Below are positions 1-46,716 of a DNA stretch of 64,000 nucleotides, piece after piece. Source of the stretch: Lepidodermella squamata (taxonomy: Eukaryota > Animalia > Gastrotricha). Below the pieces are notes generated by a model. It was not told where the DNA came from, did no database searches, and saw nothing but the letters and a program-made list of their open reading frames with translations. The translations under genes were made by a program, and so were the position numbers. The DNA is taken from NCBI GenBank assembly GCA_047495785.1, contig JBLDXI010000042.1:3844001-3908000 (forward strand), in the 5' to 3' direction. The first letter of the stretch is position 1. Every line of letters begins with the position of its first letter.

Positions 1-969
1 ATGACATCCAGCCCGCCCTTGTCCAGATTGATGTGCGTGGTCATCGGCCGTCCAGCGTGAACTTTGTCAAACGACCAAATGTTATCACTCCGTGAAGAAT
101 TGTTGCTCACTTCGCACATTTTATACTTCAGCCAGCAGGTGCCTGTCGGGTAGACGAAGACGAAACCAACACAACGCTCGCGATAGGTGCGATCACACTT
201 CTGCGCGCATTTCATAGGCGTCGAGCCATCAAAGTTGGCTATATCATTGCCGGGGCAATTGCCACGGTAAACTCGGTAGCCGGGCACTTCTGCAAAACCA
301 GATTTACGCTTATCGATATTGTTTGTTGTTGAGTTTAGACCTACCGTCAATCGGCCTTGGCCACAGCATACTGTCAAACAGTGCGTACCCATTCCACCAC
401 TTAGTCACATTGGAATATTTCGACGACAAAATCTTATAGGGGATAGAGTTATTTCTACGCGTGATACATGCTTCTGGCGCAATTGTTACCTGGTAAAGAA
501 TGTCCCTCTGCTGAGGTGACTGGAACGTCACCATTTCGGACATGTGGCGCTCCTCGCAGATTTGCCACGCATCAGGGCGTAATCGCGAGACAGTATCCAT
601 GTAATAGCACTTGTTGCTGATAGGATCAGCCTCCCAACCGGTTGGACAGAACTTTTTCTTGAAGTACATCGTATACCCACGCCCGGTTGGGTCAACGTCG
701 GTCTCGGGGAGTGGTAGAGCAAGATCTTCATGGCTATATAGCAGGCAACTGCTATACGCTTGGCTGAATGCGACGCTGGAACACCGTTTAATCAGGCAGT
801 AGGTGAAGCATTCGCCGGAGACTGAAGCCGGAAATTCATAACTCGGTTTCAGGCTTACAGGTAAACGGTTGTTGAGTTCCGGATATGTCTGCCAGATCTG
901 CTCAGTTTCGAGGCTGATGGCCAGCGAAAAACAGACACACAGTGATACGAGTAAGCGGTTGTCAAACAT
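1..969 (-). CDS. Secreted PAN/apple + C-type lectin domain protein (3' end runs off the window)
   Basis: Signal peptide MFDNRLLVSLCVCFSLAIS; PAN-like motif ECFTYC..RCSSVAF..SSCLLY; CTL start CPTGW...KCYY...AWQIC...WWNGY. GT-AG introns 489-433 (57 nt, in frame) and 344-290 (55 nt) lead to a second PAN domain (GNCPGNDI..KCAQKC..RCVGFVF..GTCWLKYKMC). Exons 969-490, 432-345, 289-<1. Confidence 0.8.
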
Positions 970-16064: not shown

Positions 16065-19000
16065 TCATACAAATATTGCCTCGTCGCTGCTGTAAATGGA
16101 TGATAGCCGGCAACTTTCAGCCGGCGCAAGTGGCGCGTAGCACAGCGCACTTGCTTCACGCTTCGAAATAACAGCCGGCGATGAAGCTGTGATTACAGCG
16201 TCAGTTTTAGCCACTACTTCACCATTTTTAAGGCGGTTATTATTATTGTCGTTATTATTAACTTTTTCGAAACTACGTTTCCGCTTTTGCACCGGTGACG
16301 CGAACGCGTCGAGGCGTTCCGCTTGAGCGATTTTCTCCTCCTCGTGTGTGAGTTCCAACAATGATTCACCCGTATGCTCGATGGGTGCCTGCAATGTGTT
16401 CGTTTTATTAGCCGCAGGTGGTCGGTTGTTATTCTCAACATCAGCTTTAGGAACGTTTTTCCCTGCTTGGACTTTCGGTTTTCGTCTGTATTGGCTTTGA
16501 CCAGTTCCCAACAAATTGCCGAATATAGCTGTTGTTTGACGACTAATAATCGCTGAGACATTCGTCCTGTGAAGATAAAATACATCTCTATTAGTAAAAA
16601 TTTGAGTTAATTTTTGCAGGCTGCTGAACCGAAATTGGCTAAGCGGAACCTAGCCCGGATGTTATTAGAATATCTAAGAAGAAACCCAGAAATAAAAAAA
16701 ACCGAGAGCTATAAAAACCTCTAGACCTCTAGATTTCTAGCGGTCATAGTTCGTGAGTTAAACTTCAATCTATCAAATTTGATTTTTCATCGAAATATTT
16801 TTAAACGACACCATTTGCTTTTCAATTTTCAAGATTCAAAGGATCCCCGATATTTGGAACTATCTGGAACCAATAAGAATTTAAATTTATTAGAGTGTGC
16901 TGATGTCTGAAAGATAAAAATTAGCAACCTAAGATTAGAAAATAGCTAAAAAACTTCTACAAGAAGTGATGTAAAAACTGGTCGAATTTCGGACATTTTT
17001 CCATCACTTCAATACCGAACCAAAAATGCTATGACGAGTAAAGCAAAATTGATCATTAATTTATGAACCTTCTCCTCCTTAAGTCAACCCAAGCTGCATT
17101 GTTCCTGAATGTCAAGTTCACAGAATCTGGTAATCATCCTCAAGTTCGATAAAAACCATAACCAATCTTACCTGAAAGTTTCATTGACAGCATAGTAGAT
17201 GAAAGGATTCGCCCAAGAGTTGACGTAGTGCAGATAGAACACAAAATGCTGCGCGTCGAGGCTGAGGAAGCTCAAATAGCCAGATTTGAACAGCAAGGCC
17301 GGCGTGGTCGATGCAACGAAGACAATAGTAACCAGCAAGACAGTTAGCAGAGTTTTGAAGTATAATTTCAGCGTTTTCGCTTGGATAGTGTGATGACTGG
17401 AAGATGAAGGCGATCCGATGAAAGCTGATTTTATCGTTGTGCTTTTCCGAATAGGTTTCGAAGATTTGGCCGCGTGATCTTGTTGGTTCGCGCCGCCGTT
17501 GGTTGGTTGTTGCGGCGTGTTCCAGCTTTGTTTAGCCAGGTAATTTTCGCGCTTCTGTTGCACGGCGGCATGTTGTAGTCGCCGGCGAATGGCCCACCAG
17601 AATACGAAGAAATACGCAACGCATGTTACAGCAAGGCATGCGATGAAAATCGCCGTGTTCATGTGGGACAGAAAGAGCCTGTGTTGTGGGAGAAAAGTTT
17701 GGGATTACCAACAAAAAGCATTAAAGCATTAAAGCCCAGCATGTTTTCGGCAAATATTTTTATTTTTCTTTCCCTATTGACACGTGCCATTCCGATAGAG
17801 AAAAATTCGGGGACGAAGAATCTGAAAACCGCATATTTTTATCATCTACCGTTGTTGAGATATTCCAGTGTCAAGTTGTCACGTGACCTTACCTGTTGTC
17901 ACACCTGAACGATTATCTCAAGAACGGTGATAGCCTAGGAAGCCGCTCTCAAAGAAAAAGTTTATCAGCGTGATGAGATCTATCTGGAAATGCATTCAGT
18001 TGGGTTATAGGTGATACTTCGGGCAAATCGATTTTGATGACACTTTAGTGCAATTCGGTGACAGTCCCAAAAAACGGCCCCTAGCTCATCACCAAGCCGA
18101 GACACTGGTCATTTATCAGTTTTCCCCGACGTGATACGATTTCCCAACATGGAGATATGCCTTGTAGTCACCCTACATGATTTTTTAAATATAATAGGGT
18201 GGGGTGGCAGGAAAAGATGCCGTTGGGCGTTAATGGGTTTTATAAGCTGAAAGCTGAAGGCTGAAACCCACTGATATGCGCTTGACTTCTGCAAGTCACG
18301 ACTCTGTTTCAATCCTGGATACTGGATCTGGAGATTCAGGTTTCTGGAATCGATCAATGTGTACGGCTGGGCTGGGTGGGAACCTCACAGCTTGGGTTCC
18401 AGCATTGCAAGTTAAGACTGCTGCCCCAGATTTTCCCAATGTTAGGATTTCAGGTTTTCTTTTGAATCTCACTTTAAGTGTCATAGGTGGCAGTATAACC
18501 GGTTAGATGAGGAATATAAGTAAAAAATAAGTATCATTCGTTGATTCATTCGTTGAATCATGATGATTAACTCAGACACTTATTACGACTATACATTTTC
18601 GATTGATATGATTAATATATTTACCTGTCCTAAAGAATATCCTCTACCCTGATTACAAGCCTAGCAAATTCTCAGTTCCATCAATTAATTTACCCCGCGT
18701 CTATTTTTGAGATGTACGGGTGTCATTTACGCAATTTCATTCCTTGGCAAGCAACCATATTCCCAATTTAGCGTTGATGGAAAAAATGATCCATGATGTA
18801 AGTCAAATTGTCGGGACGAGAAGGTACTGAGAGAAGGAGCGCGAAATAGAGGGCCCAGCTTCTAATCAACTTGAGCGCATGGTAAAACATGGCTTGTAAA
18901 GAATGTGGATTCTTGCTCAACGGATAAATGCTCTGAAATTCAACGATCAAGATAATTTATCTATCTAATTTTATAAATCACAGAAGCTAACGTAAACACC

Positions 19001-21508
19001 CACTCGATACGCATGCTACTCTGACAAGATCACTCTGATGAGTGTGGATTCATTATGGACAATGCATCGCAGCAACATAGGTATGAAGGTAACTGCGCAT
19101 TTGGCAATATCTTAGTATGTCACTTTTATAGGAATATTTCTTCGTCTTCAAACTACGCAAACAAATTCATATACTATAAAACTAAATCTGCAGAGTGAAT
19201 TATTTATCATTTTGAAAACGGCTATGGCATCGCAAAAGATCTACAAAGCCACTGGTGGCAATAAGTTCGTTTCTATAGCATTCTGTTTGATTATCCTAAG
19301 CCAAGCCGTTGCTTCAGAGCAGCAAAGCGACAGTGGAAAAGTTTTGCGACGTATCATGGACTTACTAGCAGGTAAAAGCCTTGAAAGTTTGAATCAATCC
19401 GTTCTTAATTATATGTCTGTATTGAAGATAATCCAGGAAAGTCTACGTCGAAAATGGTTCTATCGAGCGCTTTGAAACATAAAGCACTTCGACTGATGCG
19501 AATGAGGAAATGCATTGAGATGGTTGGGCGCAATCTGTGCGACAAGAACAGCCAAGGATCTTTTTTCTTATGGGCGAAACTGTACGCTAACGACATTTTG
19601 TCCGGAAAATATGACAAGCAGCTATTTATAACGAAGAAGAGTTTAACTTCTTAATACAAGTCGATTTAGCGTCAATCTGTTCACAATTTTGCAGATGTGC
19701 CAACAATTTGAACATTTAAGCTGACTGATTTTCCGAAATAAACCACTAAGTTTTAGCCTTCAGTTGATTCCCTAGGCTTATATTTCAAAGTAAGTCTTAC
19801 ATTTGTTCGAATGAAAAGTAAACTGGCTGAGCGGTGCATCGTCCTGTGTAGAGATTGAATTCTTGCGGGGTATAGCCCGTAATTTGCTCGACAATTTGCT
19901 CGTTTCCTACAGCAGCTGTGGTCCTTAAAAGCATCGCCGACTCTGAGACGGCTAGCACCGAAGTTTTGTTAACAAACACTTGGCCAGCTGTTGTTGTCGT
20001 CGGGTCTGAAATTTCCGGGTTTTCGATAACGACTTGGTACACGCTGTGGCACAGTGAGGACATTATTGCGAAGGCGAGGGTGGCTACGGCAGCCCCGATT
20101 GCGAAGGCTTTCGTCGCTCTGACTTGGTTGACGTGGCAGAAAGGCACAATGGCGTAGCACAGGCGATCGATAGCGATGCCGGTAACTATGATTGCCGAGT
20201 ATGGAACGCTGGTTATTGTGAACATGTAATAGATGTGGCAGATTATCTCGTAGTTGGCCATGAAGTTTGACAGCAACTGAAAACAAGAAAACAATTCAAT
20301 AACATCATGAGAAACTAAATCGAGAATCCTTTATTATGGATTGGCTCTTTTAAGCATAGGGCTTTTGCAAAGCCGTTAACACATCGCAAAGGGGAGGATG
20401 TCCTGAAAGCTCCAAATTACCTAAACGAATTCGAATGAGTTGCGAAGGCTAAGGGCCATGTTAAAATAAGAAAGCTGATGATTGAAAACCAAAGATTCCA
20501 TTCCTTCAAGCTGTTCGCTCCGAAACAGCAAGTTTAAAATGGAAAGGAGGCAGGAGAATTCAAGGATGTTATTTCAACGAGATGCAACTAAGTGGCTGAA
20601 TGCTGAATGCTGAATGCTGAGATTTTGGTTACCATTTTGACCAATTTGATGCTCCAAAAACATGGCCTGTAATGTTTCCAACTTCCCTAGAGATACCTTG
20701 TAGGCTTCATTTAAATGCTTTCACTTAAATGCATTGTCTATTGGGCGTCTCTCTTCTCTCTTGCTACAGCCATCATGAATGCCTCAGGATTCCTAGATGT
20801 TTCATCTTAACAGAACCCAAAACCCTAAGCGTGTTCACCATATCGACTCGGCAGTCTCTCAATATTGAGGAGATCTTTGATTTCTAAATCTGAGAAGGTC
20901 AAATAAGAAGCGACATCGGGTCTGAAGGCTTATGCTAAGCTTGTAGTCAGAACTTAAGGCTTTGCAAAGAGGACTCAAATTTCGGATTCACTCGGCGATT
21001 TTTTGAATAACCCAACGCCATGCAAGCCTAATTTGATGGCAGTATTTTGAATCCCTCGATTTTCAAACTTTTGGTCCTATACTAATTAGTGCTTCGATCC
21101 AAAGGTGTGAGTTTCTGGTAGACAGGCGAAAGCACTTACCATGTAAACTGTGGCTGGAAGGGTTATTGCACATGTGACAAGATCAGTAATAGCCAAGCTG
21201 GCGATGAGCACTGTTGACGTTTTAACGTGAGCTTCTCGCGATATGACCGCGAGCGACAGGGCGTTGCATACCGTACCAACTATCGAGAACAATATCAGCA
21301 TGGCCGCTATTGCGCTTCTCACGATTGGATCCTCTGGAATCAAACCATCGCTCATGTGTTCCTCGGAATAATACAACTCGCCGTCAGCTTGCAAATCTTC
21401 ATTCGAGTAGCTCGGTACAGATGTGGTGGCGAATAGAAAATCATTGGTTGAAAGGTAAGAGTTGAGATCGGTTGATCTCACAGTCATGCCCATTTCATCA
21501 AATTTCAT
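16065..21508 (-). CDS. Class A (rhodopsin-family) GPCR, peptide-receptor-like orphan, about 617 aa
   Basis: Exons 21508-21140, 20276-19801, 17678-17172, 16566-16065 join in frame. TM1 GTVCNALSL, TM2 SLAITDL, TM3 IAIDRL, long ECL2 with Cys, TM6 FVASTTP, TM7 NSWANPFIYY, helix 8 NETFR. Confidence 0.9.
17848..17928. repeat. Intronic inverted repeat, probably the core of a small non-autonomous element
   Basis: ACCGTTGTTGAGATA (17848-17862) pairs with TATCTCAAGAACGGT (17914-17928), one mismatch. Confidence 0.5.
19224..19654 (+). CDS. Putative secreted peptide/neuropeptide precursor (124 aa) nested antisense in GPCR intron 2
   Basis: Exons 19224-19371 and 19428-19654 joined by a 56-nt GT-AG intron. 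Signal peptide (FVSIAFCLIILSQAVA), RR/RK/GK sites and a C-x8-C motif. TATAAA at 18972, candidate 5'UTR intron 19081-19193, AATAAA at 19737. Confidence 0.65.
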
Positions 21509-23926
21509 ACAGCATTAGCGTGAACATCTTGCGATTAAATGATCCTAAATGTTTATTTAAAAAATTTTAGGCTGAAAATATGAAAAATTAGAACCATTAA
21601 AAACCGTGAGTTTGAGCAACAGATTGCGGAATGAGTGTCCCCTCTTAATTTTGGAAATCGCTAGGTATATCGGAAAATTTAATGCCATTATGATGGTAGA
21701 TTATAGGAGCTTCAATTTTATAGTTCACCAGTTAGACCACTTCGAAATTTAGAATTTTCGAGCCATTATAAGTCCCCTGTGAGTTTCTTGGCTAGGTGGT
21801 ATTTTCTGAAAAGGATGAAAATTCCCAAGTTTTGACATTGGAAAAATTCCTCACCTTTAATTCAAAGCTATGCGACCTTGTAGAATCGTGAAATTGCGGG
21901 AAAAATCTGAAAAAATTGGATCTAGACACTAGAAAATGTTAATCGAAATTGCGGTTGCCCTATGGTTTTATTCCATAATTTGGTATAACCTTGGTTTAAC
22001 CTTCCGTAATCCCAATTTTAGGTCAAAGGACCGAAAAATCAATAGCCAATGCTGGCTTTTGAAGCAGGCTAATTAGGAATGTGAAAAGATACAGAAAATA
22101 GGGTCGCGAATCATTTTGCCTGGTCTAACATCTGCCGAAATGAATCGTAAACAAGCTCGTTAAACACGGTCTCACAGCGCTATTATATTATACAGCCGAT
22201 ATATATGGGGTCTTGTAGGAAAAAAATAGCGCAAAAATCACTATCGCAAAAACGTCTCATTCATCGCGCGTATTTTTGTATGGAAATATTATTTCCTATA
22301 CATTTTAATTAAGGAGCAGATAAGCCGTGCATGAATACGCGTATGTTATAAATATATAAAAAAGGTCTCTAGGCGTAAAAATCGTGTAAAAATAACGTGC
22401 CGAACCTTGTTCGATATATGACATAGCTTTATCAAAGAATACCACGTGCGATAAATCGATATTGACCACATTTAAACAAAACGGTTATGAATGTAAATAC
22501 ACTAGCCACAATTCTTAGTAATTATTCAAAAGGTTTAAGCCTTAGATACTTCAAACCCCATCCTAACAAAAAAAAGTTGTCGATATTTTGTCTGCTCTTG
22601 ATAAAATTATTTTCCTTAACTAATTTTTTGCGTTTTCCGGCGATAAAAAAAATGAGAGATTCTATTACAGGATAATACACCTCTAGGCGGACAGGTGAGA
22701 AGAGATCAGAGTTATATAGCCCGAAACGAAAATAAACTTGACTAGTGCTCAAGCTCAGCTTCTTTGTTTATCTAATCGGTCATTTTTTCTATATTGCATA
22801 TAAAAATAATATTTTATTATTACGACGCCTGTACAGTGCTAATACATTGAAGGAAGCTGCGCGAAAAAAAAGCTCGATTGAAGAACAAATGATTGAGGCC
22901 AGGCGAAAACTATTATAAAACGATTATACTTTCGCAGTGTAAAATATAATATTATGTATAAGTATCGATAGCTGCGAATAATAGCAGCGGAAGTGGAGAG
23001 CTGCGATTAATTTGTATCGCGTGCTGCGGAAAGAAACTCGGGACTTTTTCCGAAATCGCGCGAAATGATTTATTTTCGCCGCCAACATCTCTCGAGAGGC
23101 GATTCTCCAGCTCGAAGTTCAGTTCGACTCAATAAATAGCGCTGTAGAATAGAACATGAAAGCAGTCTAATTTTGCGGTGATTTCAACATTTTTCAACTT
23201 AATTTTGCAGCCTGTGGTAGTAAATATACGAAGCTAAATGTATTTTTTATAGCGTGAGATGCCGCAACTAATATTGTCCTTTCAAATAACATTACTAGTG
23301 AATAATTACTGGTAAAGCAATTTCGCCAAGCAATTTTTTATGCTAATCGTAAAATTTGTACTACTTTGAGACTGGGATATGCAAAATGTACCCTTGATCC
23401 TGTTCTATAATCCAGTTCTCAAACCAACCTATAAACAACAACATTCAGACCTGAAAAAAAATATTCAAAATTTTGAGTTATTGATTTCATGCTGGTGAAA
23501 AAACTTCTTGAAAATACTAAAATAGCCAATGCGAAGAATCGACTTGTTTCCTTCGATTTCTTTCGTTATATATGAAGAGGAAATGCCTGACTAGCTCAGA
23601 AGAGAGCCACAAGCGAAGCTGAAAAAATTGAATCAAGGACCGAATTAGGCTTTCCTTGTCGCAAACTTTCAGCGCCCCGGTTTTTTTTCTATCGCGCTTC
23701 GTCGGAAATCAAAGGAGTCATTATTTGTGTTACGTTAATTTCGTTTTTTTCCGCAAATTCTGGAGACTCTCACGCTCAACATGTGACATGTTTATTTATA
23801 TACAAAAATAGGAAAAAGTGTCAAATAAAATGACGTGCCCCGCTGAAGTGACGGCAATATACGGTCAAGAAAGCAAATACTCCAAACGAAAGTGAAAATT
23901 TTAAAAATGACTCTCAAATGACCATT

Positions 23927-27375: not shown

Positions 27376-30300
27376 CTAGCACCTTGTCTCGTAGATGCCG
27401 CTGCGGCCGATGTAGCGCACCCACTTGACGACGTCGTGATCGCTGTAGTTGAGCTTGGGCTCGAACACCTTGAGGTAGCGCACCTTGAAGCCGGAGGGCG
27501 CGAACGGCACTTCGAAGGACATGCTGATGGGCGGGCGGTTCCACTTCTTCTTGTCGCCGACGGCCAACAGGTCGATTTCCGCCGACAGCTGGCACTCTTT
27601 CATGCCCGCCATGCGCTTGATTCTAAAACACAAACACACGCCCGTTAAAAAGTTACAAAAACCAAAAAATTAGACAACAATCGATTTTTCACGAATCTCA
27701 AAAAATTGAAGAATAAAAGAGATATTACTCAAATTTTAGGCATTAAGGAGGCTCTGACTGAGCAAAACTCGACTATTTCACTACAACCCACAACTCATTT
27801 GCTTCTGATAGGTTACTCAAAGGGAGAAATAGCCGATATGGTAACTCTTTTCCTTGAAAACCAACGACCTATTCATTTCGAAAAAGTCATCCAAGCTGGT
27901 ATATTCAATCGGAAACGATTCCAAAGCTTTCATACAGTGAAACGGCACTAGCCCACTACACGCAGATCATCTGGTAAGTTCAACGGCGGACCGGAGAAAT
28001 GGCGGTTTGAAACACTCTTCGGAGGCTAATCTCGATCTTACTTGAAGGAAAATGCGATTTGTTCATTCTTATTAGCTATTTTGAATTAGCCAACTACCAC
28101 AATAATCCAGCTTCTAGCCATTCATTCGTCATAAAACACGCGAGCCAATCAGCTCATCATTGAAGTTGAAGTCGATTTCGATGACGGTACGTTTCGGATG
28201 CCGGCCGTAGCTGATTCCGAGATCGCCGACGTGTATTGGGTCATTGGGCACAACATCAGGGAGATCATTCCCGTGCCTGACTGAGTCGATCCTGCTGAGG
28301 AAGCTGAAAAAGCCCGTTTGGCTGCTGAGAAGCGTGCGATTGAAGCTGCCCGCAAAGCAGCGTTCGACAGTATCCCGGACCTCCCAATCTTCGACGAATA
28401 AGATCTTTGACGAAGACGTGTGAATAATAACTGAACCGCTCTTTCTCACAATAAACATTTTCGGCCGATTTGTTGTTCATTTGTTCTATTACTGGTCTTT
28501 CAATTAATGTTACAACACCGCCTGCCGCCACTCCAGCCCGGCGACAATGCGTTAATTCCGATACCCGAGCTCGATCGATGTCCTGTGGACCCTCGAAATG
28601 AAGCCGGCGTGGTTATTGAAGTCACAGACCGCGGTCACTACTTTCTCGGCACTCCACATGGCCACTTAGATCGCCATTTCCTGAGGCAAGAAGTTACGAA
28701 AACGGACTTGGTCACCCTGCGGCCGGATCAAGTCCCCGAGAAACAAATCATCGGCAATTCTATCGCGACCCCGCAACAATTCGGCTGCTGACGCTGGTAA
28801 GAAGGTACAGAAGGGCTGCAAGTGCAAACTAGATTGCGAAACGGGACACTGCTTTCGCTTTATTTCGCTCACGTGATACAATTTTTGACTTAACAAAATT
28901 GTATCTTATTTTTCTCAAAATTGTTTAAAAAATCTCGATTTCACTGGTGCATTTTTTTTATAAAATCTGATCACAGTTGTTTTGTTGCGCCCATGCATTT
29001 GCTATCACTTCTAAAATTATTTTCTGTCGTGGTCGATTTCGGACTGATTGTAACAGAAACATAACTCTTCCAATCTCCGCACGTCCATGAATGGCGTTGA
29101 AATCTTTTTTTCTCAACTTCTAGCTATCTCTCTAAATATCTTTTCCTCGAGTCAACTCACATACAACAATAGAATATGGAATCCGATAATCGATTGTGAG
29201 GACTATGCCAATTTCTTTATTTGCACAGCGAAAATTGTCTACAACGGAACATTTTGAGAGGCTCGATACGAAATTGTAGATTGTAGGCTTCACTTACTTA
29301 TTTTATGGTCTAAATCGGACTCAAAAATCGGTCCGGTTTAGACCATAAAATCAACATGTGAAATTTGAAGTCAGATTTAGGCATGAAAAGGTCCATTCTA
29401 GTATTTTCAGTATTTTTCCCGACAAGAGACATCTTAAAATTTGAAAAATCGGCTGATCTTCCCTAACCTAGCTATATATTTCAATTATTTTTTATGAAAA
29501 TTTAAACATTTCAGAAATTAAAATGACTAGGCAGCTGGTAAAATCTAGAATTTTTTCATTATATTTTCGAACCCAGACTCGCTCAAAACCGGAGCGTTTT
29601 TCCCGGCACAGTCATAGAAACCGAATATTATTTTAGTAACCAGCGACTTACTTCCATAGAATGGCGTTATCCGAGGCCTTGTAGCGCGCCTTGCCCTTCA
29701 TGCACAACACCTGGCAGCCGCTCGTGTTCGGCGGCGTCGGAATGCGAACCTCAATCTTCTGCGCCAGCAATTGCGGCTTGAAGTTGGACTTGAGTACAAT
29801 TTTCACCTCCATCTTCTGTCGCCCGATCTCGCGAACGAGCGGCAAAATGCGGAACGGCAGGCTGATGTCCTTTGTCGTGCGGTAGCGCATCAGTTCGAAC
29901 TCGCCATCAGGCGGCACAAAGCTGATCGAGTGTTCGGCTTCGAATTTGCTCAGTTTCACGCACTGGTGGAATTGGCAATCGTCGATGACAATGGCATTCC
30001 GCGACTTGCTCATATCATCTGACATTTGCTTGCCCTTCGCCTCCATGATGACCTTGTCGTTGATGCCAAACTTGCACTCGGGCATACCGCTCAAATACGA
30101 CTTCATCACGACCTGAAAAATTAGGAAAAAATCGATAATTCAAATCGATCAAAATAGAAATTTCCCAACTATAATAAACTATTAAGGAGGATTTTGTAAA
30201 TTTTAGTATCAAAAACTCATTTCCATCACAAAATTGAAGTCAAAATTTCAAATCAAGAGCTTATTTTTGTGTCAAATGTTACCTTAAATTTGATTCAAAT

Positions 30301-30984
30301 TCGAAATTCTGAAACTTTTTCTAATTTTTAGGCTAGATTTTCCAACTTTTTCCAACTTGGGTAGGGTTAGATTTGATTTAAGCTCACCTTTCCAGCAACA
30401 TGGCAGCTCAGCACTTGACCCTGAGGCGACATGAGTAGGTTGACGTATTCGATAACATCGAGGAAGAGCTCGTTACGGCGGTATTTGATACCCTCACGAC
30501 GCCAGCCAATCTGCCCAGTCACTTGACTAGTCAACTGAGACGCCGGCTCCTTACCAGCTGTCTGCGCCCGGATGCCCTGCTGCATGATAAACGACTTCAA
30601 ACTGCCGGCTTCGGTCGTTTGCGGGTAGCCATAGTCAAGGACTTCGTCCAGAATTTCGTAAATGAGAACGAAATTGTTTTTGATATTGTCCTCGGAGAGT
30701 TTGCCGAAATACGCGGCCATGACTTCCATCATTTTGTACATGAATTCGAAAACAAGGGCTGCGTTGATGTTTTGCCGCGTGACGGCGCACAGCCAAATAT
30801 TCGACCGTTTAATGTGGAAAAACGACGTCCGAGAAATGTTCATGACAGGCGAGCGAACTTGCTGGCGGGCATGGATGACGTTGACTCGAAACGCATCGAC
30901 CGCATTCCTGCCAATATCGTCGCGATAGATTCGAGAAATCAACACCTCGCCCTTGTGGTTGTATATAAAAACACCACCAATCAT
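27376..30984 (-). CDS. AP2M1: AP-2 complex subunit mu, 434 aa
   Basis: Exons 30984-30388, 30112-29652, 27622-27376. Highly conserved sequence from [47 protein letters not shown] to [16 protein letters not shown]. Confidence 0.98.
28150..28860 (+). mobile_element. Decayed Ginger2/KRBA2-SCAND3-like integrase transposon C-terminal fragment in AP2M1 intron 2
   Basis: [44 protein letters not shown] followed, in another frame, by the Cys-rich [14 protein letters not shown]. This matches my recollection of that family's C-terminus. An upstream coding-like stretch (28153-28400) has an internal stop. Confidence 0.7.
29300..29351. repeat. Intronic hairpin
   Basis: ATTTTATGGTCTAAA / TTTAGACCATAAAAT form perfect 15-bp arms, extended inward by CGGAC/GTCCG. 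Confidence 0.7.
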
Positions 30985-39782: not shown

Positions 39783-40533
39783 TATACAATTTGTTGTACA
39801 AAAAAATCTCATTTTTTGATATAAAAAAAGAAACTCTGGTCTGTGTGTAACAGTCTATCGTTCGTGTTTTTCTAAATCGACAAAATCTTGTCTTTAAACG
39901 GTGTCCAATCTCGACGTGTAAAGCGCGTATAATTTTCAAGGAATGACGATTGATTTTTGTGAGTTCATTCGTGAACAGCCTTTTGCTTAGGAGAAATTTA
40001 GAACTATGCCTTTCGTGTCTTTTTTCCAAGGTGTGCAAATTCCGCGTCTTCTCTCTCTTATTCAAGGGCCAACTTCGTCTTATTGCTGCAATTCGCACAC
40101 TTTTTTATAGAAAAAAATTTGAAAAATTATGGCGAAAATTTTGAACCTTTTTTTCGTTGTTTTTTATAGAAACTTTTAGTAGTCAGTTTTTTGGTTGCGA
40201 ACTATTCTTGTCTTGTGTTAACTAAGTGTAATAGCGCTTGTTATTATTTAACGACTTATTGTGCTCGTTCCTGCTGTAAAAAGAGTTTGAAAAAGCGAAT
40301 GGTGAAAACACACACACAACTTTTGAAAATTTGAAAATAAAAAGCTCTATTCATAAAGATTCAACGTCGTTTTTCAGGTGGAAAATTTATTCATCTGTAT
40401 TGTTTGCTCAGTGGTGGTATAGGGGTGGGGTTTGTTTCGTTATCAGTGCGATATCAAAATGCTGACCGCTTTTTCTCGCCCTGTTATTATTAGAGGCAAT
40501 TTTATCGTTTTATTCACAAGAAATTTTGCTGTA

Positions 40534-43500
40534 ATGGCCCAACCGACTTACACGCTGCCAGCTCCGTCGCTGGAATTAGTCACCCTGGATTACATCCGGA
40601 AGACGCATGAAGCAATTAAACCTTATATTGTGCGAACTCCGGTTATTTCGAACGAATATTTAACGCAGCGAGTTTCGGACGCGGTTGGTCATGACGTGAA
40701 TTTGTACTTTAAAGCCGAATTGCTGCAAAAAACTGGCGCTTTCAAAGTTCGCGGGGCGTTGAATGCCGTGATCGCGGCGAAGGCTGCGAAGAACGGCGAG
40801 CCTCTGCCCGGTGTGGTCACCCATTCTTCAGGCAATCACGGTGCTGCAACTGCCTATGCTGCGATGAGACTGGGCGTCAAGGCAACGATTGTCGTACCGA
40901 ATTTTGCGACGCAGGCGAAGTTGAACAATATTGCGCAGTATGGTGCTGAAATTATTAAGGTGGAGCCGCGGCCTGAGGCGATGAAGGAAGCGTACGAGCG
41001 GGTGATGCACGAACGTGGCTATTCGCTGATTTATCCGTACAATCAGAAGGAGATTATGGCTGGCCAGGTGAGAGATTTAAACCTAGCTTATTAATCGTAG
41101 TTAGCTAGTTGCATCTTCGCTTACTACTATTGAATATCTTATAGCGGAACCAAATCGGCATTTTGCGGAACCTAATTTTAGGTAACGAAAAGGTTGCTTT
41201 TTGCATTTTTCTACGAAATTAAGGCCATGCATGAAATATATAGTAAATAATGCGCCTTATACAGAATTTTACGCTGAATTTAATGATGATTTATTTCAAA
41301 TTATGCTGATAAATCATGAAAAGCTTGAAAGCTTCGAAAAGTGCCTTTAAGCCCATTGAAAATTCCAAAATTTGGTTCCGCTAAAAGTAAGACTCTTGAA
41401 TTATTTTTCAAATCATGTTTTTTTTTTATTAATTTAATCATTAAAAATAATTTTCCGATCTGGTTTTTCGATTTAATAACCATTTTTCATGGTATTATCG
41501 AGTATCGATAGCTCAATGCACCTGGACGGATAATCAAAATAAAAATCTGAAACCGGAAAATGAAAAATGATTATTCTGATCTTTTCGGAGATTAAAACTG
41601 TAACTTACATATTTCACGACTAGGCATCTTCGGGGTTTCAGCAAGGCAAGACAAACCAACAAATTTAGTCACCCGCATTTTTCGACATTTTTCGAGATTG
41701 TCCCCCCATTTCCCAACTGCAAGCTTTGATTGATTCAAGGAATTTAGCAGAGTTTTTAAGGGGTTGACACCAAAAAATATTTGCCATGCAAAAATGTGCT
41801 CAACACTTTCAATCACAAATCAAAATTGCTATCACTGTTCGAAAGCCGCAGCAACTCAAGTCCTTCAGTCGCATCCGCAAAATTTCTTCAGAATCGGTGG
41901 CTTCTTTTGGGAAAACTCTCCAGCATTTTCCCATTTTTTCTGCCTGTGGTAACAAAGCAGGTTCGTTGATGGAGATGCGCATAGCAGTGACATATAGATC
42001 GTCCTGAATCCGATTTCGAGATTTTGTTATTATTCTTGATCTTGCGCTGAACCCTCTCCAGACGATAGATTTTGCCCGGCTTTTAAAGAAAGTTGCTAAT
42101 CTCTTTAGAATTTCAGAATTTCATTTAGTTATATCCCGAAATTTAAGGAAGATAGAATAATATTTAGTCAACATATCTGTCGCGTAAATCAGTCAGCTTG
42201 CTCATGTCTGAGCAGCTTCCAAATGAAGTTATGTAGTAAGTGGCATCGACTGAGAATAAGTAACAGAGCAGGTGAATTGTTTGCAAATTTGCTAACAACT
42301 CGCAAATGTTCCGGCCAGGGATGGAAAAAATGCCATCCCTCGATCCCAACGGGATTGGGGAAAAAATTTCTGTGACCTAAAAAGGTGGGGAAATGGATTT
42401 TTTAATTAAATTACATTTTCAAGTGCAATAATTTGGGACTTCAAAAAGCTGTTACCATTGAATTAAACAAATGCTATCGACATCCCAAAAACTTTTGCAC
42501 TTCTTTGAAAGCGAGCAAAGTTCCTCGTAAATATCGGTCAAAATTTCGAGTCTGAGAACGAATCGCCAAAACTGCTTGCTTTATTCCTCTTCATTTGTAA
42601 TTAAAACGTGTTGAGTCTGATGACTCGTATTCACGCAATACCATCTGTAAAATTGGTAAAAACAGCTTTTTGGCGAAAAGGCACTTTTCGTGGAGAAATG
42701 GAGACTTTCAACCCTGGCTCCGGCTCTGGTATGTAGTGTAGTGGTAAATTTTGCCTCAAATTCTGGAGGAGTCCGCTTATAAGTTAACGCGTACTGATTT
42801 TTCTTCACATCAAAGCGACATTTTGTTGACTAGACTGACTTCGGCGAGTTTACGTAGCCGTTCGGTGAAATTACGGAGTTACGGTTGCAACTTGTATTAG
42901 GAACCAGTCGCAGAAATCCGATCTTAGTTGAGCATCACCAGGATACAGCTGTTGTACCGCGTGTTTCTTTCAAGGTATGAAGTCCATTTGATGTTCAGAA
43001 ATGCGGTCTTTGAAATATGCAATGTTCTTCCTGCATTACGCGTCGAGTCTTCGAGTTTCAGTTCGCCGGTTACGAGCACCGCGTAGTACTACACCGTTTT
43101 TTCAGTTAGCGGGTCGATCTTGATGATTTTACCAGTAGCATTCATCGCCAGCTTGCCGAAACCTTGCTTGAGACCGTTGTAGAAAACTTCAAGTTGTTCA
43201 GTCGTCCACAGGTAGACATCAAATGGGTAAAACCTAAAAGAGTGTCTCGCTGTGAATCTTCCGGATTTAAGTTTCCTTTTTCCTCTAAAAATGCGTATTA
43301 ATTGGACCGATTCGGAAATCGATTGCGGTGGAGGCTGAGGCATGGTGCAGAAATTCCACGAACCCGTGTACGTTATGCAAGACGCGACAGTTTCCGCTGA
43401 TAATTTCAGTTTCATTGCATCGATATTATTTTTCTGATGTCAGATGGAATTACCCGGTTTTTCAACGCATTTATACGTGATTTCCAATGACGCGAAAGTG

Positions 43501-44419: not shown

Positions 44420-45335
44420 AGACGATACAAATGAATGGAAAATGCAATATTCCGCTATTTACAATTATTTTTGATTTATCTGAAACGTTTATGCCATCGA
44501 AAACATAGTATTTTTTGTTGCCTGTGAGAACGAGACAATTACCTATAATTATTCTATCGACGCTATATTATATTACGAATTTGGGAAAAGAATGAACAGT
44601 AATTATTTGAAATATTGGTTTTTTTTTATTGCGAGATGCCAACATTTTCAGAGACATCATTGCGAGATGAAGAGAGATGAGAGAGTCCTAGCGACGTAAC
44701 TTGTTGTCAGAAAAAGTTGAAATGAAAGAAAATGTTCTCGAAGCGGGCGAAGGCAGGACTATCGATGGAATCAATCTCAAAGGGCAGACCAAGGAGAGCT
44801 CTTGAGGCATGCAGATCCAGAAGATGCTGCTGTGATGGCATCTATTTATATCATGGGATAATTCCTAAACAGTTGCGTTGTTAAATTCACTGCGTACAGC
44901 TGAAGCGCGACCGCGAGCGGGCCGCCCTTCCCCCTTCCCCTATGAGACGTACCAGGAAAACGGTATTTTTGCCGAACTCGTGCACCAAATCAATGCGATC
45001 AGCTCATGAATAGTCCGACACGCAGAGATGTTTGTTAAGGAGGATGCAAGCCCCGGCGTGCTGGTGCCCCGAGCCCGAAGACGACGACCTCACATTTTTT
45101 CGTTTCGAGGCACGCCCATCGATTTGCCATGACGTGAAGACCGCAAGGCAAAATGTATTTATTAGTTTCATATCACTTTTTTAGTGAAAATATTTTCATC
45201 TGTATTTGCACGGTTGTTAAGGGGTGTAAATTTCGTTATCAGTGCGATATGAAAATGCTGATTGCTATTTTGCGCCATGGTATTAAAGCCGCCAATTTTA
45301 TCATTTTATTTACTAGTAACTTTGTTGTAGTAAAA

Positions 45336-46716
45336 ATGGCCCGGCCGACTTACACGCTGCCAGTTCCGGCGCTTGAATTTGTCACTTTGGACTATATTCG
45401 AGAGGCGCATGAAGCAATTAAGCCTTTTATTGCGCGAACCCCAGTGATTTCAAACGAATATTTGACCCAACGAGTTTCGGACGCGGTTGGTCATGACGTG
45501 AATTTGTATTTAAAAGCCGAGCTTCTGCAAAAAACGGGCGTTTTCAAAGTTCGCGGGGCGTTGAATGCCGTGATAGCGGCGAAGGCTGCGAAGAACGGTG
45601 AGCCTCTACCCGGTGTGGTCACCTATTCGTCGGGCAATCACGGAGCTGCTACTGCCTATGCTGCGATGAGGCTGGGCGTCAAGGCAACGATTGTTGCGCC
45701 GAATTTTGCGACGCAGGCGAAGTTGAACAATATTGCGCAGTATGGTGCTGAAATTATTAAGGTGGAGCCGCGACCCGAAGCATTGAGGGCAGAGTGCGAG
45801 CGAATTGTGAGTCAACGTGGCTATTCGTTGATTTTTCCGGACAATCAGAAGGAGATCATGACTGGTCAGGTAAGACAAGTTATCTTAATATTAATTAATT
45901 CAGCGCTTTTTCTTCTTAAGTCTGATAACTTCGTGCAATTCATGCAATTTTTTTCATCCTCTTATAAGATATGGATGGATTTTCTAGATCAGGGGGATAA
46001 TTTTTGAGTTTTATGTTTCGGTGCACATAATTTTCATTATTTTCATTTTTGTTAGGGGACTTGCGCGGTCGAATTTATAGAAGACGTCCCAGAACTGGAA
46101 TGTATGTTGGCACCTGTCAGTGGCGGCGGTTTGATCTCTGGGTTGGCGTTGGCCGCGAAACACATGAAAAAAGATTTGAAAGGTTAGTTCAAGTTCACTT
46201 CTCATAGTTAGAACCCGGATATATGCGAAGATTTTTGAATTACCGAGAATTTATTTTGAAAATCCGAAAAATTGTTCTAGGTAATGGAAGTGCTCGAATT
46301 TCTAAGTTTTAGTTAATTATTTAGTGTTCGGAGTCGCGCCTATCGCCAAACAGTTGAATAAAGCCCTCGAAAACGGCGTAGTCCCGGAACATTGGTCACC
46401 CTCGAATTTCATCGACACGCACTGCGACGCCCTGAAGGCCCACCCTGGCAATCTAACCCTGCCCGTCATGTGCGAACTGCTCGAGAAGCAAGCGTTCGAT
46501 GTGACGGACGAAGACGCGGCGGCCGCGATGAAAATTTGCTGGCAGCGACTGAAACTGACCGTTGAACTCAGCTCGGCCACTGTCATTGCTACCCTTCTAT
46601 CGCCTGAATTCACGAAAGTTGTTCGGGATCAACATATTCGCCACATTGGCATTGTTTTGTCGGGTGGAAATGCTGATTTGGATGCTCCATTGCCCTGGAC
46701 TGTCTTGAAAAATTGA
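45336..46716 (+). CDS. SRR: Serine racemase family PLP enzyme, copy 2 (tandem duplicate), 350 aa
   Basis: Exons 45336-45869, 46056-46182, 46325-46716, the same sizes as copy 1 (534/127/392 nt). Motifs QKTGVFKVRGA, VVTYSSGNHG, TGQGT, SGGNADL. Confidence 0.88.

Follow-up and report, generated by a model that had tools for sequence, protein, structure and literature searches.

Does the second intron of a receptor gene in the gastrotrich Lepidodermella squamata house a second, independent gene and, if so, what does that gene encode? The question arose in a 64,000-nt stretch of genomic DNA (assembly GCA_047495785.1, contig JBLDXI010000042.1, positions 3,844,001 to 3,908,000 of the forward strand), hereafter called the window, whose numbering is used throughout. 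Two short open reading frames (ORFs) on its plus strand can be joined into a putative small gene nested antisense within intron 2 of a minus-strand rhodopsin-type receptor gene. A preliminary description of this locus had interpreted the joined ORFs as the precursor of amidated peptides and had suggested that the host receptor might be their target. Judged from sequence comparison, the best reading, to which we give about an even chance, is that of a lineage-restricted secreted precursor containing a ~31-residue disulfide-looped amidated peptide.

A relative matches both exons of the candidate gene

The translation of exon 2 (window 19430-19651, 74 amino acids (aa)) was compared with 1.84 billion representative proteins in an exhaustive phmmer search; the searches were run with the two exon translations separately rather than with the spliced 124-aa protein. 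Two proteins were returned, P0001 and P0002. P0002 (134 aa), which begins with a typical signal peptide (MLQVIFSIAICTLVLSVSLDPAFG), matched with an E-value of 5.3e-4 in a single stretch that spans residues 84-132 and nearly reaches its C-terminus. The search for conservation that had been proposed with the preliminary description thus yielded one relative. P0001 was rejected as a relative, being a WD-repeat protein whose score adds up from four weak stretches. This 778-aa protein contains five near-identical copies of a ~43-residue segment, by which its score is inflated, and looks like an assembly or prediction artefact.

In a pairwise BLASTP alignment of exon 2 with P0002, 22 of 51 residues were identical and 37 similar, with LSSALKHKALRLMRMRKCIEMVG-RNLCDKNSQGSFFLWAKLYANDILSGK of the window protein facing LPAAAKDRVMYMLRMRKCIARLGSKQICENNT--AFYLWAQLLARDIMAGK of P0002, followed in the latter by L-G-stop. 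Common to both proteins are RMRKCI, both cysteines and F-LWA-L-A-DI--GK, and P0002 ends two residues past its Gly-Lys. In the reciprocal direction, a six-frame tblastn search of the window with P0002 found 19460-19609 at an E-value of 3.5e-10, the next match being at 0.9. The codons differ at 13 of the 22 shared residues, and the similarity that blastn detects between the two sequences is confined to a 24-nt patch. These codon differences and the nearly blank nucleotide comparison indicate that conservation acts at the protein level and that the protein is under selection.

Exon 1 matched the same protein. Its core SIAFCLIILS aligns with residues 7-16 of P0002, SIAICTLVLS (BLASTP with composition correction, E 0.006), a match that was reached by chance in 0.5% of trials when only the core was shuffled and in 0.08% when residues 1-31 were shuffled. 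Both exons match one small secreted protein in the same order, which fits the two-exon model rather than stray ORFs. From these alignments we consider it very probable that the candidate is a real gene, separate from its host, and that it encodes a small secreted protein, as had been claimed.

P0002 is encoded on a 1,079-nt contig (L001) of run SRR31012058, where its ORF is uninterrupted from 600 to 1004. A TATAA lies 64 nt before its ATG, and the contig carries no receptor exon. The locus looks genomic and single-exon, and P0002 may come from a related species or even be a paralogue. The contig ends in a (CT)n microsatellite (1058-1079), 50 nt past the stop codon; it was probably at this microsatellite that the assembly broke off. 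A word-indexed protein search with exon 2 and P0002 returned only P0002 itself, and a metagenome scan with two conserved motifs gave 158 pattern matches, none of which was confirmed.

Stray reading frames as an explanation

We considered the possibility that there is no gene at this position, that is, that two stray intronic ORFs happen to be joinable by a GT-AG pair and that the match to P0002 is a chance resemblance between spurious ORFs. Two-exon models were counted from each first ATG on both strands, keeping the best model obtained via any GT..AG of 45-100 nt. In the real 64-kb window, 71 such models reached 120 aa or more, and 5 of these began with a crude signal-peptide-like start; second-order Markov sequences of the same size contained 31.6 ± 7.1 models of this length. 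The simulated sequences contained 0.95 models with a signal-peptide-like start per 64 kb, and at least one was present in 58% of simulations. By itself, the two-exon signal-peptide pattern would be insufficient to infer a gene; it is homology that supports one.

Codon usage does not separate the candidate from stray ORFs either. A codon log-odds score was trained on the 11 secure exons that the window offers; by this score the candidate is neutral (~0 per codon, vs 0.04-0.43 for the secure exons and 0.05-0.10 for the receptor exons), and about 40% of the other unmasked window ORFs of at least 60 aa reach or exceed its score. Further points that speak against a gene are that the spurious P0001 outranked P0002 in the same phmmer search, that a single relative was found, with a modest E-value, and that the splice joint is present in no contig of either sequencing run described below over 17000-21600, spliced RNA not having been seen. 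Neither the word-indexed collection nor the gene calls contain the proteins, and exact look-ups of the unspliced ORFs of 66 and 83 aa, as well as of two other ORFs of the window, found none on record.

Chance would, on the other hand, have to account for a match that reaches its E-value over the whole library in one stretch, for an independent match of the signal-peptide core, and for a P0002 reciprocal best match in the window. It would also have to produce two proteins of similar length with the same order of parts, the same C-terminal position of the module and aligned cysteines, and to place synonymous differences at conserved residues. We regard an origin from stray ORFs as improbable.

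Layout of the nested gene

The ORFs, the 56-nt GT-AG intron, the TATAAA at 18972, the GT..AG pair at 19081-19193 and the AATAAA at 19737 were all found at the positions given in the preliminary description, and the gene lies antisense within intron 2 of a class A receptor gene, as it had stated. Table 1 lists the features of the locus. The start codon is the first ATG downstream of an in-frame stop at 19113. From there, the exon 1 frame reads MASQKIYKATGGNK-FVSIAFCLIILS-QAVA/SEQQ..., to 19371 (a slash marks a cleavage or splice point). This start comprises a basic n-region, the core FVSIAFCLIILS and then A-V-A/S, and it passes a crude rule-based test for an N-terminal signal peptide (basic n-region, 12-residue uncharged hydrophobic core, A-V-A). 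The exon 2 frame is closed upstream by a TAA at 19406-19408, and its earliest start when taken alone would be the Met at 19454, without a signal peptide. The conserved part would therefore acquire a signal peptide only through splicing.

Table 1. Features of the nested gene and of its host gene in the window
Feature	Position	Strand	Remarks
Host gene, 451-aa rhodopsin-type seven-transmembrane (7TM) receptor	17171..21508	-	Three exons: 21508-21140, 20276-19801, 17678-17171
Receptor intron 2	17679..19800	-	2,122 nt; contains the nested gene and a dispersed repeat
Distal TATAAA	18972..18977	+	Promoter of the preliminary description, with a putative 5'-untranslated region (5'UTR) intron at 19081-19193 (GT..AG pair)
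Proximal TATAAA	19175..19180	+	49 nt before ATG 19224, no ATG in between; putative promoter
Exon 1, coding part	19224..19371	+	Met1 to first base of codon 50; signal-peptide-like start and RR site
Putative intron	19372..19427	+	56 nt, GT-AG, phase 1; donor CAG/GTAAAA, acceptor TTGAAG/AT
Exon 2, coding part	19428..19654	+	Ends with stop TAA 19652-19654
Conserved module	19460..19609	+	LSSALKHKALRLM-RMRK-C(x8)C-...FFLWAKLYANDILS-GK; predicted released peptide, residues 78-108 plus Gly donor
AATAAA	19737..19742	+	83 nt past the stop codon, ~60 nt before receptor exon 2; putative poly(A) signal

With the junction of the preliminary description (19371/19428), the spliced coding sequence would be 375 nt long and encode 124 aa. 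An alternative donor is present at 19387 and an alternative acceptor ends at 19436. Both donors combine in frame with both acceptors, so that the junction is not fixed: the four options read ...LLADNPGK..., ...LLAGKSTSK... and two longer forms, and they give proteins of 121-129 aa. The junction given earlier is thus one of four candidates, and IMDLLADNP-amide, the first peptide predicted from it, is not supported, as it depends on this one junction and has no counterpart in P0002. The statement that 56 nt is a typical intron size in this region held in part. A verified 55-nt intron in a PAN-domain gene (see below) shows that short introns occur in the window, but the other verified introns of the window measure about 140 to 2,122 nt.

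The proximal TATAAA is the more likely core promoter. Six ATGs (19013, 19038, 19055, 19062, 19083 and 19117) lie between the distal TATAAA and the start codon. The distal TATAAA and the 5'UTR intron proposed with it are present as sequences, but they make a less economical arrangement because the first four of these ATGs would stay in the spliced 5'UTR. The proximal layout, furthermore, matches that of the contig encoding P0002. At the other end of the gene, the AATAAA is the only AATAAA or ATTAAA in 19600-19900.

Copy number and sequencing runs

Two sequencing runs of the same organism cover the stretch, X1 and X2 (2014; 21 Mb of contigs). Run X1 covers 17000-21600 unbroken and behaves as DNA. 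Its depth is flat, at ~82, over 19067-20880, where a single contig with zero differences includes the nested gene and receptor exon 2. This flat depth indicates that the nested-gene locus is single-copy and not a repeat, and blastn and tblastn searches inside the window found no second copy of the candidate. The preliminary description had named a match to a transposon as an outcome that would speak against it; with flat depth, no multiple copies, no repeat or transposon match and no Pfam match, nothing pointed to such an origin.

Heterozygosity is patchy in this region. A second, haplotype-like contig of run X1, differing by 7-10%, covers 17047-17198 (13 differences in 152 nt) and 20851-21041 (19 in 191 nt), while the 1.8 kb of 19067-20880 are represented by a single contig at summed depth.

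Run X2 contributed one 202-nt contig, at 19496-19697 (exon 2 and 3'UTR), and none other in 17000-21600. By our own arithmetic, a random contig of 202 nt would fall wholly inside 19428-19760 with a chance of ~3%. The genome paper of L. squamata names a public adult transcriptome of 2014 (PMC11660948). Run X2 may therefore be RNA.

Predicted product

The similarity between the window protein and P0002 is limited to the signal-peptide core, to RMRK with weakly similar residues before it, and to the segment that begins with the first cysteine and ends with Gly-Lys. Signal peptide and module are separated by an unalignable spacer of ~30 residues in one protein and ~59 in the other, and Gly-Lys is followed by 14 unrelated residues in the window protein vs two in P0002. 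In this comparison of two sequences, a conserved peptide bounded by basic sites is accordingly set among unconserved spacers, and both proteins carry, as a putative amidation signal, a Gly followed by a basic residue. Conserved peptide and variable spacers, as they appear in this alignment, are the usual signature of a peptide precursor. The predicted peptide would have 31 residues in the window protein and 30 in P0002, with net charges of 0 and +1, respectively, and an amphipathic C-terminal tail (hydrophobic moment ~0.7). It ends in S-G-K in the window protein and in A-G-K, then L-G-stop, in P0002.

The mechanism that these features suggest is as follows. The plus strand would carry, within intron 2 of the opposite-strand receptor gene, an independent gene of two exons that is probably transcribed from its own TATA box ~50 nt before the ATG. 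The resulting preproprotein of ~124 aa would enter the secretory pathway, the signal peptide being predicted to be cut after A-V-A (residue 30). The C-terminal module, the only part kept between the two proteins, comprises RMRK, the two-cysteine loop, the amphipathic helix (F-LWA-L-A-DI) and Gly-Lys. A prohormone convertase would cut after RMRK, a second cut would fall behind the Lys of Gly-Lys, this Lys would be removed by a carboxypeptidase, and the Gly would be converted to a C-terminal amide. The peptide released would be near-neutral, with ~31 residues and one disulfide, and might act as a hormone or neuropeptide via some receptor. We infer transcription, the exact junction, secretion, processing, amidation and signalling from the predicted features. 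Secretion of the product is likely, while its processing to an amidated Cys-loop peptide is in our estimate evenly balanced. The 31-aa amidated Cys-ring peptide of the preliminary description accordingly stands as to its extent, since the conserved part coincides with it from RMRK to Gly-Lys, while its release and amidation could fall either way.

Several observations weigh against this processing scheme. A single Lys after the amidation Gly and Arg-Lys, as in RMRK, are less common convertase sites. The 13 residues before RMRK are also weakly similar between the two proteins, the two homologues differ in the size of the Cys ring (8 vs 9 residues), an unusual variation for a pharmacophore ring, and the AlphaFold model of P0002 runs a helix through RMRK, although this model is poor (pLDDT 57, pTM 0.33). 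Moreover, no match was obtained with Pfam, PDB or the ESM Atlas, and no additional relative came out of the metagenome scan.

The conserved residues before RMRK and the helix through this site would equally fit a real gene whose product remains uncut, namely a small secreted helical protein of ~94 aa after removal of the signal peptide (a binding protein, a pheromone or a matrix component), in which RMRK and Gly-Lys are merely conserved surface residues of a helix. The Arg-Lys and single-Lys sites, which are weak for convertases, and the variable ring size also speak for such a protein. The AlphaFold model of P0002, all-helical and most confident (72-79) in the 'spacer' helices, agrees with it as well, but its overall confidence is low, too low for a fold search. 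Yet, only the C-terminal 51 residues and the signal peptide align, and the spacers differ by ~30 residues, which would not be expected of a folded domain; P0002, furthermore, stops right behind its Gly-Lys. We consider the uncut protein a serious alternative, although less probable than the amidated peptide.

A third possibility is that a peptide is made, but that it serves as a defence, toxin-like or pheromone peptide instead of an internal signalling peptide. The amphipathic C-terminal helix and the lineage-restricted distribution would suit this function. The net charge of 0 to +1, however, is unlike that of cationic antimicrobial or membrane-active peptides, and the gene is single-copy and not part of an array. 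This role appears unlikely.

Comparison with known peptide families and gene arrangements

No known family matched, in agreement with the preliminary description, which had not recognized one. Pfam searches at E-values up to 10 found nothing for the exon translations, for P0002, for its C-terminal part or for the antisense ORFs; the ESM Atlas gave no usable match with exon 2 and P0002, and a PDB profile search gave noise only.

In its general plan, the candidate resembles the precursors of bilaterian neuropeptides and peptide hormones. It would be a small precursor encoded by a two-exon gene with the signal peptide on exon 1, variable spacers, and RMRK before and a Gly-basic site after the peptide. 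It differs from them in having Arg-Lys and a single Lys, instead of Lys-Arg or Gly-Lys-Arg, and in having no sequence relation to a curated family, its own family consisting of two members known from sequence.

The layout had been called calcitonin-like. Peptides of the calcitonin/CGRP type have ~30 residues, an N-terminal disulfide ring of the form C-x5-C, an amphipathic helix and a Pro-amide, and they are ligands of class B receptors. The predicted peptide shares with them the length of ~30 residues and the succession of ring, amphipathic helix and C-terminal amide. In contrast, its ring is C-x8-C or C-x9-C, it would end in a Ser- or Ala-amide, and the host receptor belongs to class A. The likeness of layout holds, but membership in the calcitonin/CGRP/amylin family was rejected, there being no profile match up to E 10, a different ring size and no Pro-amide.

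Melanin-concentrating hormone (MCH) and elevenin-type peptides are short, end a few residues past the ring and are not amidated. A two-cysteine ring of ~8-9 residues and a C-terminal placement in a small precursor, after a basic site, are features that they share with the candidate. Unlike them, the candidate continues after the ring with a ~20-residue helical tail and a Gly-Lys end, and no sequence similarity to them was detected.

The arrangement is that of other genes nested in introns: the gene is small but complete, runs antisense to its host and lies in an intron that, by the standards of the window, is large (2,122 nt vs about 55, 140, 190, 274 and 863 nt for the other five verified introns). 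The gene and its arrangement are both of familiar kinds. The candidate and P0002 could credibly be the founders of a peptide family not yet described. If this reading is true, a peptide-signal gene is present that is in none of the protein collections searched. It would define a family that is small and apparently restricted to one lineage, characterized by RMRK, a Cys loop, F-LWA-L-A-DI and Gly-Lys, in the Gastrotricha, a phylum with almost unstudied peptide signalling, and would provide a concrete peptide of ~31 residues to synthesize and localize. It would also mean that short spliced secreted genes in introns can be recovered from raw sequence, given one distant relative.

The host receptor and the idea of a ligand-receptor pair

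The three exons of the host gene are bounded by the following splice sites. Exon 21508-21140 ends in the donor ATG/GTAAGT. Exon 20276-19801 has the acceptor TTTTCAG/ and the donor AAT/GTAAGA (GTAAGA at 19800-19795). Exon 17678-17171 follows the acceptor CACAG/G (ending at 17679), and its frame runs on into MNTAIF.... Each exon weakly matched Pfam 7tm_1 (E 0.0037, 0.038 and 1.3e-6), falling short of the whole-protein cut-off since the exons were scanned one by one. DRL after TM3 and NPFIYY in TM7 are visible in the translation, and all ESM Atlas neighbours belong to the rhodopsin family. The host gene is, as judged from these motifs and matches, that of a class A (rhodopsin-type) receptor.

The closest solved structures were all faint matches (muscarinic M5, the nearest, somatostatin SSTR4 and kappa opioid; E 0.016-0.2), and a search with exon 3 found no relatives within the allowed length range. 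For both reasons the receptor, as far as its translation tells, is divergent and not assigned to a subfamily. Its exon 2 (19801-20276, minus strand) encodes a second extracellular loop, between TM4 and TM5, that with roughly 70 residues is unusually long, and no relatives of the receptor were detectable among proteins of 93-296 aa.

The preliminary description had raised the hypothesis that the host receptor has its natural ligand in this peptide, nesting keeping the pair together. Besides the physical nesting itself, it can be said in favour of such a pair that the weak nearest solved relatives of the receptor include peptide receptors (somatostatin, opioid; E 0.04-0.2). All these matches are weak, however, and the nearest is muscarinic; the failure to find relatives of the receptor with exon 3 is a further point against the pair. 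The P0002 contig carries no receptor exon, although at 1,079 nt it is too short to show nesting. Ligand and receptor genes, furthermore, usually need expression in different cells, and antisense nesting tends to couple or disturb transcription. We consider it very unlikely that the two form a ligand-receptor pair, and the nesting is probably incidental. The more elaborate proposition, in which the candidate and P0002 found a new family of disulfide-looped amidated signalling peptides and the host receptor, inherited with the candidate as one unit, has the peptide as its ligand, is equally hard to credit. A ligand gene inside the gene of its own receptor would be remarkable if true; the idea comes from position.

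Intron 2 of the receptor gene also contains a dispersed repeat (window 17770-18230), over which the depth of run X1 rises from ~80 to ~5,000 (roughly 60-fold). This repeat is represented by many variant contigs with internal deletions, and an inverted-repeat search around it found no terminal inverted repeats.

Other genes in the window

A secreted PAN/apple-domain gene lies on the minus strand at 3-969, with a downstream exon that matches PAN_4 at E 9.5e-9. Two of its exons are joined by the well-supported 55-nt intron mentioned above (290-344, minus strand; GTAGGT...TTTTGCAG). Two further loci were assigned by eye from their translations. On the plus strand, 40432-41094 and 45153-46716 form a tandem duplicate of a serine racemase/threonine dehydratase-like gene, in copy B of which introns of ~190 and ~140 nt flank a small exon (~46057-46184). 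On the minus strand, 29648-30984 contains a gene for a clathrin-adaptor mu-subunit, the first two exons of which are joined via a 274-nt intron (GTGAGC...TTTTTCAG).

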